Counted from the first letter of the stretch, positions 13,006 to 49,777 are shown. The stretch is DNA of 64,000 nucleotides from Orbicella franksi (GCA_964199315.1 OZ116698.1:5146001-5210000); one strand, 5' to 3'. The notes: a model not told the origin generated them from the letters alone. Numbers and translations: made by a program.

Positions 13006-13135
13006 GGTGGGGCGGGGTTTGACTCCCTGGCGTAGAGTGCGAGCCGGCCTCGTATGAGGGTGCTCCCACTCCTTGGCGGTACTTTTTCATCTATGCCTCT
13101 ATGGTCGGTGGACATTGCACTGCGTCCATCGTACC
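13006..13135 (+). ncRNA. Structured 3'-UTR module of element B (T-arm fold plus AUUGCAC hairpin)
   Basis: P1 13006-12/13064-70; CGGGG-TTTGACT-CCCTG 13013-13029; hairpin 13103-13135 with loop ATTGCACTGC. Confidence 0.7.
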
Positions 13136-13153
13136 GCCTCAAATACAAAAAAA

Positions 13154-13171
13154 ACCTTACCTGACACGGGA
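13154..13171 (+). repeat. U1-derived target-site duplication after the A-tail of B
   Basis: AAAAAAAA-CCTTACCTGACACGGGA. Confidence 0.85.
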
Positions 13172-13440
13172 TTGTATGGCCGAAGACCCTATCATTTTGG
13201 TACCCCTTTTGTTGTCCTTCTTTAATTTTGGTAAGTTTGGCAGCTTTTTGCTGGTTTTTGTGGCTTTTCTAGCTATTTTCTGGGTGCCATCTTACCTTCG
13301 AGTCTTCTGGTTGATTTCTTGGTCACCCACCTAGCGTTTGGTTAAGCTGGGTCACCCATCCATTGGGGTCTTCGCCGATCTGGGCTTAACCTTTTTTCTT
13401 TTGCTTGGCTTTTTGCCTGGTGTTTATCATGCTGCCGCCG
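13172..13440 (+). mobile_element. 5'-UTR stub C of H-family U1-targeting element
   Basis: Matches 6661-6876 and 43385-43610; body missing, abuts the U2 promoter region. Confidence 0.8.
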
Positions 13441-13499
13441 TTTTTCCTTAAACACACGGTGGACATTGGTCGGTTCCAGGCCTCTCAGTGACAGCATAT

Positions 13500-44934: not shown

Positions 44935-45900
44935 GTTTGGCTTGTTCGAGGTCCTCCTCGAACTTGAGGCCTCCCTCCAGATCCAGATGGCTCTCTCCGC
45001 TGTTGTTGCTTCGTTGATGGTTTTTGCAGGTTTGGTTGGTTTTATTGTTGTCCAAATTCCCAATTGTGTTGGTCTTTGGTCCAAATTTCCAATTATTATC
45101 GATGTAAAGGTAGTAATTGATATTAATAATATATATTGCTTAGTTGTTTTCACTAAACTCCGTAGTATACCAATTGTTCCATGTTCCAAATTATCACTTA
45201 CATTCTGGTGTTTCTGCCACTGCTTGTTTAGCTTGTTTGAGGTCCTCAAGCTTGATGTCTTCCTTCAAAATGTGATGGCTTTCTCCGCTTTTGTTACTTT
45301 GTTGATGGTTTTTGCTGTTTTTGTTGTCCAAATTTCCAATTGTGTTGTCCTTTTGTCCAAATTTCCAATTATTATCTATGTGAAAGTAATTATTGATATT
45401 GATAATATATATTGCTTAGTTGTTTTAACTAAACTCCGTAGTGTACCAATTGTTCCATGTTCCAAATTATCACTTACCTTCTGGTGTTTCTGCTGCTGCC
45501 TGTTTAGCTTGTTCGAGGTCCTCCTCAAACTTGATGTCTTCCTTCAAAATGTGAAGGCTTTTTCCGCTTTTGCTGCTTGTTGATGGATTTTGCTGGTTTG
45601 GTTGGTTCTATTGTTGTCCAAATTCCCAATTGCGTAGTTCTTTGCTCCAAATTTCCAATTATTATTTCTAGTGTATACCTCAACCTATTTTATAACTTAA
45701 GTATCGTAATTGTAGTGAAAGTAGAAGTAGATATCAATAACATATATTGCTTAGTTAATCTAACTAAACCCTGTAGTGCACCAATTGTTATCCTTGTATT
45801 GTCTCTGGTTCCAAATTCCAAATTGTTTGTGGTGTCTATGGGTCCAAATTGTGTCTCAATTTACTTGTTGTGCCAAATTGCAATTGTTGTTTGCTGTTCT
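44935..45900. repeat. Three ~280-290 bp degenerate tandem units inserted between ORF1 and ORF2 of H
   Basis: CTTGTT(C/T)GAGGTCCTC recurs at 44941, 45232, 45508. Confidence 0.8.
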
Positions 45901-48900
45901 CCAGCTTCTCTCCTACCATGGCCTTGTCTGTCCTCTCTCTTAATTGCAATGGGATTAGAGACCAGTCTAAAAGGACCGGCCTTGTTCAGTGGTTGCACTC
46001 CTTGCCTCTTACTGTTGATGTGGTCTGTCTGCAGGAGACTCACTGTGTCTCTTTGGCAGAGTGTATCTCGTGGTTTTCCTCTTCTGGTTTTTTGTCTTGT
46101 GTTTCTCCTGGTTCTAATCACTTCCGTGGCTGTGTCATCCTATATCTCCCCCGTTGTCCCTTGTGGACTCATGGTCTGATGCAGATGGCCGCCTTCTGCA
46201 ATGTGAGTTTTCTTTCTATGGCAAGTCGTTTCGTGTTTGTCATCTCTATGCGCCTAATCAAAACCCTGATCATGACCAGTTCCTTGAGAATGTTTCTGAC
46301 GGGATCGATCCTTCTGTCCCCACCCTTCTTGTGGGTGACTTTAATACCGTTTTTGATCAGTTAAAGGATCGTCGTGGCTCTGATCCACTTTATTCCAGCC
46401 GTGAGAGCTCTGTTCGCTTGTCTGCCCTGTTTGACACTTGCTGTGTCGTTGATATCTGGCGGCACTTTCACCCCGACTCTTCTGGCTTTACTTGGACCAA
46501 GCAGGATGGCTCTATTGCCTCCCAAATTGACCTCTGCGGTGTACCCTATGCGTGGGTGCCCTCTGTTTCCTCCTGTGACATTGTTTCCTGTCCTTTTTCT
46601 GACCATTGTGCTCTTCTTTTGTCGTTGTCTGTTCCAGATGTTGTTCTCCCTGGCCCTGGATTGTGGAAATTAAATACCTCTATTCTATCTATGGAGCATT
46701 GTGATCTTATTTCTATTGCCTGGAGTAAATGGCGCTCCTCAGTCTCTCGTTTCCCTTCTCTTGCCAAGTGGTGGGAGGGAGGCAAGAGTCTCATTAAAGG
46801 TCTTACGATCAAGTACTGTTGTCAGAGATCAAAAGCTCATTCTAGCAGTAGAGATCTCGTCCGCTTGATTGATCATTTGAAGATGAAAATTGATGGTGGC
46901 TCTTCCTCTTGTGTTGGCCCGTATCATTCAGCCCTTGCAGAATTGGCCAAATTGGATCTTGAGGCTGCTAGAGGGGCCCAGGTCTGTTCTAGGGCCCGCT
47001 GGGTTTAAGGTGAGACTTCCTCTGCCTATTTCTTTAGGCTTGAAAAGAAGTGCGGGGCCGATCGCCGGATTTCGGCAATCAAGTTAGATGATGGTACCAT
47101 TGTCTCTTCCCCCGCTGAGTTATGTGCAGCTTTTGGTGCTTTTTATACTTCTTTATTTTCTGCCAACTCCACTGATCCTGTTATTCGTGCTTCTCCCCTT
47201 GAGAATGTCTCTTCCTCCCTGCCTCCTGACATGGCTGCCCTCTGTGAAGGACACCTTACTGTCCGGAATGTCTTACTGCCCTTCAGGGTATGGCCAGGTG
47301 TAAGGCTCCTGGCTTTGATGGCCTTCCCATCGAGTTTTATCTGAAATTCTGGTCTGTCCTTGGTCCTGATTTGGTCAATGTCCTTAACTTGTGTTTTGAC
47401 ACTGGATGTGTCTCCTTGTCTCAGCGTCGTGGCGTCATTTCTGTTTTTGAAGAAGGGTGATCGTTTGGACCCTAAGAATTGGCGTCTGATCTCTCTTCTT
47501 AATGTGGATTATAAATTAGCTGTGCGTGTCATTGCTGGTCGCCTTTTGAACGTCATCCATTTGGTTGTTGATAAAGACCAGACTTGCAAGGTCCCTGGCC
47601 AGTTTATTGGCGAAAATGTGGCTTTCCTCCGTGATGTTCTCTACTGCTCTACCTCCTTTGATGTGCCTGTCGCTATTCTTTCGCTAGATCAAGAAAAGGC
47701 TTTTCACAGGGTGGACTGGGATTTCATGCGGTCCACTCTATCTACTATGGGTTTTGGTCCTTCTTTCGTCTCATGGGTCAACCTTTTCTACAATTGTGTT
47801 CAAAGTGCTGTTAATGTCAATGGTTATCTGTCACCCTTCTTTAATCTATCTCGTGGTGTGCGTCAAGGCTGTCCTCTCTCCCCTTTGCTGTATGTGCTTG
47901 TTTCTGAAGTTCTCGCTGTAAATATCCGTTGTAACCCCCGCATTTCTGGTCCTACCCTTCCTGGGTCATCACCTTTGTCTCCCATTTCCCAATACGCCGA
48001 TGATACCTCTCTCGTCTTGTCATCTGACAACTCCATCAAAGCTACCTTTGACACCTACAATTTGTATCAGAAAGCCTCTGGTTAAAAATTAAATTGTGGC
48101 AAGTCCAAGGGTCTTTGGCTTGGTAGCTGGCGTGGCCGTTTGGATCCTCCCGTTGACCTTGATTGGTCCTCGTCTAAACTGAAGGTCCTAGGTGTGTTCA
48201 TTGGTATTGAGGACCTGGTGTAAGACAATTGGTGGCCTCGTATTCATGCTGTAGACAATGTTCTCTCTTCTTGGCGTTCTCATTCCTTGTCCCTTCGTGG
48301 GAAGGCTTTTGTAATCAACGCGCTTGCCTTGTCTTGTATTTGGTATGTTGGTTCCCTTGTTTTCATGCCGCCTCGTGTCATGCATGAGCTTTGTACCTTG
48401 GTATTCAACTTCTTTTGGAGTGGCAAACGTGACCTTGTCTCTCGTGGTGTGGTTGTCCAGCCGCCCCTTTATGGCGGCTTTTGTGTTGTAGATGTTAAGT
48501 TGAAAGTCTGGTCGCTTTTGGCTCAATGGGTGAAGCGTTTTGCTCCCTCCCGTTCTGGTTGGGTTTCGTTTATGTCCTTTTGGTTTGATTTGTATTTCAG
48601 TGCCTCTTTCCTTGATGTGTTCTCCTCCCCATTTTCCTTTCAACCTGGTGATCTCCCTCCTTTCTACAAGTCTCTGGTTTTGGCTTGGCGTGAGCTTGGA
48701 GGTGCCTTTTCCACCTCCCGGTCTTCTTTGGTCTTTGGTTCTGCCGATCCTCATTTTTGTGTTCCTGTCTGTTCTATGTCTACAAAGTCCTGTTATCAGT
48801 TTTTGTTGTCCGATAGACTTGCTGACCCCCATTGTGTTGAAAAGTTTGCTCCCGTGTTCGGTTTGCTTTACTGGCCCTCTACGTGGCGTTCTTTGTCCTT

Positions 48901-49613
48901 TTTCGACCTGGATCACCAAGTGTTAGATCTCAATTGGAACATTGCCCACGGTGTCCTCTACACTGCTGACCGTCTTTCCTCTTTTGCCCTTCCTCTCCCT
49001 CTTCCGTGTTTCTGGGTGCTCCTGTTGAGTCTTTGTCTCACTTGTTTTACGCTTGTCCTTTGGCCCAAAGTGTTCTGTCCTGGCTTCAATCGTTGATGTT
49101 CTCCTTTAGTCTGATGTCCCCTGTTCTGCTTGTCCGTGATTCTCTCTTTGGCTGATGAGTTACGTGCTACCCCTCGCGTTTTTGATTACATTCTGAATGT
49201 GTGCAAATTCTTTATTTGCCGGTCTAGGAATGACTTCCGTTTTCGCAGTGTAAAGCCTGGCACTTTGCCTGTCATCGAGTGTATGAAGTTGGGTGTGAAG
49301 TTCAACCTTTCGTTGTTCTTTAAGCGTTTCAAGTCCTCTCGTCGCCGTCATTTTTTTCATCGTCAATGGGGTACTTGTGGTGTTATTGCTTCTGTTACTA
49401 CTGGTCAACTGTCACTCAATATCTAAGTTTTAGTTTATATTAGGTTGTTTGTTGTGTCCTCTTGAACTGCGTCTCCTTAGTTGGTGTACTGTTTGCAGGG
49501 TTGTGTCTGTTGTTTCGTTTCGTCCTGTTCTATCTGTCTTGTGTTTGTCCTTGGTGTTGTCCTGTTTGTTTTGTTTTGTGTGTCGGGGTTTTTGGGTTGG
49601 GAATTTTTCTAAT

Positions 49614-49777
49614 GAGGTAGGTGAGGTTCGATTCCTCGGCGAAGTTGGCGGGCTGGCTACTTTTGTAGGTGTCCCCTACCTTAGGTAGACCAATTGGCGT
49701 TGGACTAGCACTGTATCCTTGTTATGGATGAGACTTGCAGTGGGCAGGCATTGCACTCCTCGCAAGGGAGCCTGGCC
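49614..49777 (+). ncRNA. Structured 3'-UTR module of element H
   Basis: GAGGTAGG/CCTACCTT stem; TGAGG-TTCGATT-CCTCG 49622-49638; CAGGC-ATTGCAC-TCCT..GGGA-GCCTG 49745-49774. Confidence 0.75.

Follow-up and report, generated by a model that had tools for sequence, protein, structure and literature searches.

A candidate SNF/U1A-binding hairpin in the 3' untranslated regions of snRNA-gene-targeting retrotransposons of the coral Orbicella franksi

Introduction

The first RNA recognition motif (RRM1) of the protein U1A binds the sequence AUUGCAC together with a closing C:G pair, both in the 10-nt loop of stem-loop II (SLII) of the U1 small nuclear RNA (snRNA) and in an internal loop of the U1A pre-mRNA, and U1A sites have been selected in loops of various sizes (PMC2203988). 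In Drosophila, SLII reads C[AUUGCACCUC]G (PMC5992148), and most metazoans possess one SNF protein (PMC4114683). Here we describe a unit of the same make-up in the 3' untranslated regions (UTRs) of three degraded retrotransposons without long terminal repeats (non-LTR), named B, G and H, which adjoin U1 or U1-derived sequence in a 64-kb stretch of the coral Orbicella franksi (G000:C1:5146001-5210000, hereafter the window, from an assembly of 497 Mb). The unit is accompanied by a second conserved module, of which one hairpin resembles the T-arm of a tRNA.

The coral unit shares with U1 SLII the closing C:G pair, the AUUGCAC sequence, the 10-nt loop and three non-specific bases on the 3' side of the loop (PMC5992148, PMC2203988). 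It differs from it in lying in a retrotransposon 3' UTR, on unrelated and fast-changing stems, without the context of stem-loop I, an Sm site and stem-loops III/IV. The polyadenylation inhibition element (PIE) of the vertebrate U1A pre-mRNA is a host autoregulatory element that needs two U1A molecules and a segment of U1A inhibiting poly(A) polymerase. As in PIE, elements of the H type display AUUGCAC as an internal loop near the 3' end of the 3' UTR (PMC2203988), and a U5-targeting subfamily carries two boxes a few nucleotides apart; most coral families, however, carry a single box and have a templated A-tract. Stringent long interspersed nuclear elements (LINEs) such as eel UnaL2, R2 and SART1, whose 3' stem-loops are read by their own reverse transcriptase (RT), similarly combine a conserved loop with a covarying stem directly upstream of the start of reverse transcription, and we know of no such loop that copies the site of a host ribonucleoprotein (RNP) protein.

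B, G and H have an apurinic endonuclease (APE) and RT, a fixed site in multicopy small-RNA genes and an occurrence in cnidarians in common with the target-specific LINEs of the Tx1 clade, such as Keno in U2 and the U5- and 5S-specific elements (PMC4494074). The Tx1 targets named in that work are U2, U5, 5S, satellites, microsatellites and transposons, U1 being absent from the list, and neither an SLII-like tail nor a T-arm module is described there (PMC4494074). Alu is derived from 7SL, whereas the coral case is a loop-sized unit only, within an autonomous LINE. Alu and 7SL-derived short interspersed nuclear element (SINE) RNAs keep the SRP9/14 site, and the retention of a host RNP protein site by a mobile RNA suggests that it is of use to the element. 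We searched the literature for LINEs that target U1 and for retrotransposons that carry U1A sites, and met with no equivalent, an absence which is no proof of novelty.

The heptamer and its folds in B, G and H

The initial annotation of this DNA had reported C-ATTGCAC roughly 30-45 nt before the A-tail in all three elements, each time in a different stem. Indeed, the heptamer ATTGCAC is found at 13114-13120 in B, 43329-43335 in G and 49750-49756 in H, that is 33, 29 and 43 nt from A-runs starting at 13147, 43358 and 49793, respectively. Minimum-energy folds leave it unpaired in each element and agree with the annotated display as 10-nt loops closed by C-G in B and G and as a bulge in H (Table 1). 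The SLII of the host U1 reads C[AUUGCACUUC]G, and the loop of G, ATTGCACTTC, is identical to that of the local U1 gene at 49861-49870, as had been noted.

The window contains 9 heptamers compared with 9.9 expected by chance, and the signal therefore lies in their position: a heptamer placed in the tail has a chance of ~50/16384 per element, and it is present in three elements. Chance, considered as the origin of the heptamer, was ruled out on position despite this unremarkable count.

Conservation and structural selection

The assembly was queried with the three tails, which returned 18, ~28 and 13 distinct 3' ends; the copies were collected by similarity, their numbers are swollen by segmental duplications, and counts of subfamilies do not equal independent origins. 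An unbiased search of the genome for A-tail|CTTACCTGA junctions gave 24 matches, of which 22 are genuine, all on contig 1, the other two being chance sites without an element. The hairpin lies upstream of all 22 genuine junctions between an A-tail and U1.

Between B, G and H, the proteins encoded by open reading frame 2 (ORF2) share only 45-50% identity, compared with 39-45% to those of the U2-targeting elements A and I, which are thus nearly as close. The 3' UTRs of at least 10 subfamilies can hardly be aligned, and C plus ATTGCAC is the sole contiguous invariant block; the probability that all seven heptamer columns fall among the invariant columns is ~2e-5 per alignment (two alignments). 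The hairpin loop measures 10 nt throughout, while its last three bases take seven different trinucleotides (TGC, TCC, CAC, CTC, TTC, GTT and TTT), and the loops of some subfamilies equal the Drosophila SLII loop. The closing pair is CG in 12/13 distinct H-type rows and 9/10 B/G rows, with L002 (U:A, a double change) and L030 (a broken pair) as exceptions. The heptamer has decayed in internalised fragments of G tails on contigs 15, 8 and 13 (ATTGTAC, AGTGCAC, ATCGCAC and AGCACAC) and is mutated in 3/28 B copies; since it decays away from active LINE tails, it is not a mutational cold spot, and its invariance is due to selection.

Compensatory change in the stems, which the initial annotation had proposed to look for, affects 7/12 pairs of the H-type fold and 3/8 of the B/G-type hairpin. 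In the former, 91% of the cells are paired (slid controls, 30-58%), and in the latter 86% (slid controls, 31-49%); 0/500 shuffles reached either fold, counts that should not be read as probabilities, given also that the subfamilies have common ancestry. The compensatory series are nevertheless clear and comprise ggcAggc/gccTggcc, ggcGggc/gccCggcc and agcAagc/gcTTggct, as well as ggac/gtcc and gggc/gccc. Contigs from three other coral organisms, with at least 80% likeness, vary at 49733-49746 and 49757-49773 and are unchanged at 49747-49756, and in them 49746 A>G is accompanied by 49773 T>C. Selection on the motif and its closing C-G pair, as first suggested, and also on its single-stranded exposure is thus supported by an invariant heptamer, covarying stems and constancy in other coral samples where the neighbouring positions vary.

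The annotated resemblance to the RRM1 site of U1A/SNF extends to every sequence and structure feature of that site (PMC2203988, PMC5992148): the heptamer, its single-stranded display, the closing C:G pair, the free last three loop bases at constant length and a reader in the host. The variation permitted in the tails matches the tolerance of U1A/SNF, and both contexts in which U1A is known to use AUUGCAC with its C:G pair, a hairpin loop and an internal loop, occur among them.

The same data bear on two other explanations of the heptamer. It may be a non-functional relic, i.e. an SLII fragment captured once from U1, by template switching or read-through, by a U1-resident ancestor and passively inherited; the elements do live in U1 genes and carry U1-derived leaders, and G has 12 nt (CATTGCACTTCG) in common with U1. 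However, B and H show no U1 similarity beyond the loop, the heptamer remained invariant at 45-50% protein identity while the stems were rebuilt by compensatory change, it decays in internalised or dead copies, and it has undergone a canonical duplication in the U5 lineage described below, so that we strongly disfavour a relic and consider it very improbable. Hardly credible at all is an action of the loop by RNA-RNA kissing or dimerisation, among element RNAs or with U1 SLII, through the palindromic UGCA core, which is self-complementary and single-stranded in all families: the contact would amount to 4 bp at most, it would require no invariance of A1, U2, C7 and the closing C:G pair, and U1 SLII is occupied in vivo by SNF/U1A.

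The host SNF/U1A protein

The host SNF/U1A gene was reached via one exact match to back-translated TIYINNLNE and is located at G000:C10:16667000-16670200(-). The RNP2 pattern matched, and the degenerate RNP1 pattern RGQAFVIF had no match in the host, as the host has VVF. In RRM1, the part of the protein that was read, the exons have 50/58 identity to 6f4g, a structure of SNF/U1A (E=4.6e-29), and keep the RNA-contact residues Tyr13, Asn15, Asn16, Glu19, Arg52, Gln54 and Phe56. The host therefore encodes the reader that the initial annotation had called upon.

A second module with a T-arm-like hairpin

Between 60 and 130 nt upstream of the heptamer, the B, G and H families have in common a cloverleaf-like four-way junction, the first arm of which resembles the T-arm of a tRNA (GGGGTTCGATTCCCC). 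RNAalifold gives it 23 pairs, 10 of them with compensatory changes, and the U5 lineage has kept a shortened form. The likeness to tRNA is confined to the T-arm-like hairpin; ARAGORN recognized no tRNA in the module, which has no match to a tRNA or related Rfam family even at E up to 10. Applied to the 3' UTR at permissive thresholds, Rfam returned noise only (SNORA70 and Afu_513, E>2).

Target specificity

A census of H-type tails (45 matches compared with 17 control matches) exposed a cluster on contig 13, where U5 snRNA genes (RF00020, 86-91 bits) harbour, at ATA|CTCTGGTTT, an element closely related to subfamily H4. Seven such copies lie at G000:C13:8120300-8330060 (L088-L091, L096 and L097). 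This U5 subfamily has two boxes, ggaC-ATTGCAC-tctcC[ATTGCACGTT]Gggg, the first bulged and the second in a loop; the second is a canonical 10-nt loop closed by C:G, in place of the TTTTT loop of the inner hairpin. In a sample biased by similarity, 14 distinct tails are found at canonical U1, 9 at a leader, 4 at U5, 4 at a repeat and ~34 at other sequence, about half of the sampled copies being at non-U1 sites. In two U2-targeting families (3' ends at 6262, 56476 and L082:3786) the tails are AT-rich and unrelated, and both the hairpin with the heptamer and the T-arm module are absent from them. The CTTGCAC at 56449 in the U2-targeting element I, once regarded as a possible degenerate equivalent, does not hold up as such, for it is predicted to be paired within a stem rather than looped, and both U2-type families are devoid of the hairpin.

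The hairpin does not mark U1 targeting. The specific connection with U1 targeting that had been put forward, or a guidance of the element RNA to U1 genes, finds no support, given the two boxes of the U5-inserting relative and the share of copies outside U1; since target choice differs among relatives that share the hairpin, we do not take it as a guide to U1 genes.

Transcripts and 3' ends

Contigs from RNA libraries cover the tail of H, one of which (302 nt, 49579-49880) bridges the tail, the A-tract and U1, while another spans 49615-49811. Promoter DNA was also assembled in RNA libraries, and matching raw reads from two poly(A) runs numbered 0 and 2. These contigs, which extend from the 3' UTR across the A-tract into U1 or the leader, are compatible with read-through transcripts and are not distinguishable from DNA carry-over. 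AATACA or AATATA lies only ~5 nt from the A-tract, too near to be an ordinary polyadenylation signal, and the A-tract is templated.

A probable mimic of a host protein site

From these comparisons of sequence and fold we lean, with moderate confidence, towards a hairpin that is a selected mimic of the SNF/U1A site in the 3' UTR and not a device for homing to U1, and the elements probably borrow the host SNF/U1A protein. The tail hairpin presents the recognition unit of U1 SLII, i.e. the closing C:G pair followed by single-stranded AUUGCAC; the unit lies in a 10-nt loop whose three 3' nucleotides are free, or else it forms a bulge or internal loop as in the U1A pre-mRNA site. The host's single SNF/U1A would then be loaded via RRM1 onto the RNA of the element at a distance of 30-45 nt from the A-tract. 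An RNA with C[AUUGCACNNN]G is expected to be a strong RRM1 ligand provided that the host protein recognizes its own SLII in the canonical way, from which we infer SNF binding. What the element gains from it we infer likewise: our leading guess is that bound SNF would give the transposition RNA an identity resembling that of a small nuclear ribonucleoprotein (snRNP), with nuclear import or retention and with protection of a 3' region that would not be formed by ordinary cleavage and polyadenylation. This role in RNP identity is favoured over U1 homing, and a PIE-like block of polyadenylation is possible.

Several observations weigh against a borrowed SNF/U1A site. Two U2-targeting relatives manage without the hairpin, L002 has U-A in place of the closing C-G pair, and the evidence for expression is weak. 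The subfamilies share ancestry and may represent a single independent origin. Conserved 3' stem-loops read by the element's own RT are the norm in stringent LINEs, and the hairpin stands at the place of such a signal; the co-occurrence of another conserved module points to a larger 3' fold specific to the element.

The hairpin could accordingly be a cis-signal for the element's own RT (ORF2p) or for ORF1p, positioning the 3' end for target-primed reverse transcription, in which case the likeness to U1 SLII would be ancestral or coincidental and SNF would have no role. Its distance of 30-45 nt from the start of reverse transcription, its covarying stem and invariant loop, its maintenance whatever the target (U1, U5 or off-target) and the structured module conserved alongside all speak for such a signal, as do the truncated copies L014-L018, 57 nt long and provided with a target-site duplication, which show reverse transcription starting downstream of the hairpin. 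However, this explanation leaves to coincidence or ancestry that the loop, its length, the closing pair, the free last three bases, the tolerance of an internal loop and the form of the duplicated box all follow U1A/SNF rules, the heptamer and closing pair matching any one given motif by chance at ~4e-6. Furthermore, searches of ORF1 against Pfam and PDB sequences found no RRM, only a weak CCHC knuckle. We consider recognition by the element's own protein unlikely as the sole explanation, although with a substantial share of the probability, and it and SNF binding are not mutually exclusive.

A more elaborate version of the SNF/U1A mimic, which we regard as doubtful and well below the previous alternative, would have the transposition RNA imitate an snRNP precursor that always offers two SNF/U1A sites, two bound SNF acting in a PIE-like manner and the T-arm cloverleaf being a second hijacked host-RNA signal. 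U1-inserted elements would combine one mimic with the genuine SLII reached by read-through past the templated A-tract, whereas the U5-inserted lineage, without a downstream SLII, would have evolved a second mimic instead. The two SNF might block cleavage and polyadenylation, or steer a transcript driven by an snRNA promoter to snRNA-type 3' processing and nuclear snRNP traffic.

If SNF/U1A binding is true, this would be the first case found of an autonomous retrotransposon copying the protein-binding loop of the spliceosomal RNA family it has colonised, and a host snRNP protein would be added to the short list of host factors known for LINE RNPs. A clean, mutable handle of seven bases would become available on the nuclear return of the RNA and on 3'-end formation in target-specific LINEs. 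The natural maintenance by selection of a U1A site on changing scaffolds (hairpin loop, bulge and tandem boxes) would, moreover, help to explain how RRM1 recognizes its target. Should the reader be the element's own protein, the pair of covarying modules in the 3' UTR still constitutes a new structured LINE tail in cnidarian elements that target snRNA genes.

Elements and insertion sites in the window

The window belongs to a large snRNA gene region, and in the window Rfam recognizes one canonical U1 (49797-49960), two U2 and one 5S. About 0.4 Mb upstream, at G000:C1:4728228-4829789, at least 42 identical and intact canonical U1 genes are arrayed in tandem with a unit of 2,037 bp, and the array adjoins a zone (4.82-5.27 Mb) where retrotransposons interrupt U1 copies. 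B, G and H are recognized as degraded APE and RT elements by Pfam (Exo_endo_phos, RVT_1 and zf-RVT) and have the attributes of target-specific non-LTR retrotransposons, namely APE, RT and a C-terminal zinc motif, an A-tail and a fixed insertion point in a small-RNA gene. Their domains and type of target would place them in the Tx1 clade (PMC4494074).

The A-tracts of B, G and H are each joined to CTTACCTG or CTCACCTG, which corresponds to an insertion after U1 position 3 (ATA|CTTACCTG); the equivalent junction in U5 is ATA|CTCTGG. The three elements had been annotated as inserted in U1, which is true of H, the only one to adjoin a canonical U1 (Rfam RF00003, 132.7 bits), while B and G lie within a leader, derived from U1, that belongs to another element. 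They adjoin a ~235-bp unit whose match to U1 is limited to its first ~15-19 nt. At other sites the same leader, CTTACCTGAYGCGGG, continues in at least four unrelated ways, and in H it runs into ORF1. The ~235-bp unit is best read, from its sequence, as a U1-derived leader or target duplication plus 5' UTR that heads each full-length element, and the arrangement as one in which new copies would insert into the leaders of resident elements, creating head-to-tail stacks. A U1 variant or a spliced-leader RNA gene was considered for the unit following B and G and rejected on its short U1-like part, its several continuations and the run into ORF1 in H. No U1 promoter was found directly upstream of B, G or H, the sole one in the window being at 6576-6644. 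Element B is flanked by direct copies of 92% identity (6645-6879 and 13156-13393), which correspond to the initial ~233 bp of a leader plus 5' UTR of the H type and could have arisen as a target-site duplication of exceptional length or by recombination.

Table 1. Positions of the tail modules, A-tracts and U1-related features in the window
Feature	Position	Strand	Basis
U1-type promoter, ATA and CTTGCCTGACGCGGG leader; only uninterrupted promoter-leader junction in the window; insertion point ATA|CTTACCTG	6576..6660	+	sequence comparison
Element B, cloverleaf-like module, T-arm-like hairpin GGGGTTTGACTCCC	13006..13072	+	alignment, RNAalifold
Element B, SLII-like hairpin: 8 bp, 1-nt bulge and 3 bp, 10-nt loop ATTGCACTGC, closing pair C13113-G13124	13103..13135	+	minimum-energy fold, covariation
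Element B, A-tract (plus C), then at 13156 CTTACCTGACACGGG, U1-derived leader of the next element	13147..13155	+	sequence
Element G, shortened cloverleaf-like module, outer stem GGAGAGG/CCTCTCC, T-arm-like hairpin CTGGGTTCAATTCCCGG	43252..43312	+	alignment
Element G, interrupted hairpin: GCA/TGC, GTG/CAC and GGC/GCC round 10-nt loop ATTGCACTTC	43317..43350	+	minimum-energy fold, covariation
Element G, A-tract, then at 43369 leader CTTACCTGACACAGG heading element H (ORF1 start 43877)	43358..43368	+	sequence
Element H, four-way module, outer stem GGTAGG/CCTACC, T-arm-like hairpin TGAGGTTCGATTCCTCG, third hairpin GGCTAC/GTAGGT	49615..49681	+	alignment, RNAalifold
Element H, bipartite hairpin: outer stem 49742-49749/49770-49778, bulged ATTGCAC(T) after closing C-G, inner hairpin 49758-49769	49742..49778	+	minimum-energy fold, covariation
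Element H, A-tract, joined to U1 after U1 position 3	49793..49799	+	sequence
U1 snRNA body downstream of H; genuine SLII loop C[ATTGCACTTC]G at 49861-49870	49800..49960	+	RF00003, 132.7 bits

Other copies and minor observations

Next to off-target A-tracts, C or CT follows in 22/29 flanks. This excess was considered as a trace of read-through and could not be assigned to it, the CT in L014-L018 being part of the target-site duplication. These copies (G000:C1:41.45-42.02 Mb) carry a severely 5'-truncated H-type tail with a ACTAGAGAC target-site duplication, and the tail was subsequently amplified within a ~12.5-kb tandem repeat. The same flank, CAAAGCTCTGCTTTCATGTCC, follows the A-tail in five copies of three subfamilies (L009, L032, L038, L040 and L086). 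An RNA gene was rejected as the identity of this recurrent flank (CAAAGCTCTGCTTTC...), near which only sub-threshold matches to hammerhead ribozymes were found (L032:1980-2017 and L098:82-147), and it has no match to the Penelope-like element of the window. It may be a Penelope-like or retrozyme repeat, either a secondary target or a sequence itself inserting beside A-tails.

A further subfamily, gagagcc/gaggc-ATTGCAC-tcaccc..., has A-tails abutting CCTCCCAA... and is found at G000:C695:21470-29920 (L093-L095), at G000:C15:3013090-3013340 (L092) and on the minus strand of L043; L093-L095 are three copies ~4 kb apart on an unplaced contig. Stem-loop IV of three U2 copies (6380-6410, 56620-56650 and L082:3900-3930) reads GGUAUAGCACUACC or GGUAAAGCACUACC, human and fly having AUUGCAG; all three of these copies bear a retrotransposon insertion and may not be working U2 genes. 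Finally, a short hairpin-forming block at the start of the 3' UTR, GTCTCCTT..GGTG.ACTG, is common to the U2-type element A (5901-5921 and 6035-6059) and the U1-type element H (49471-49491), with E=0.015.

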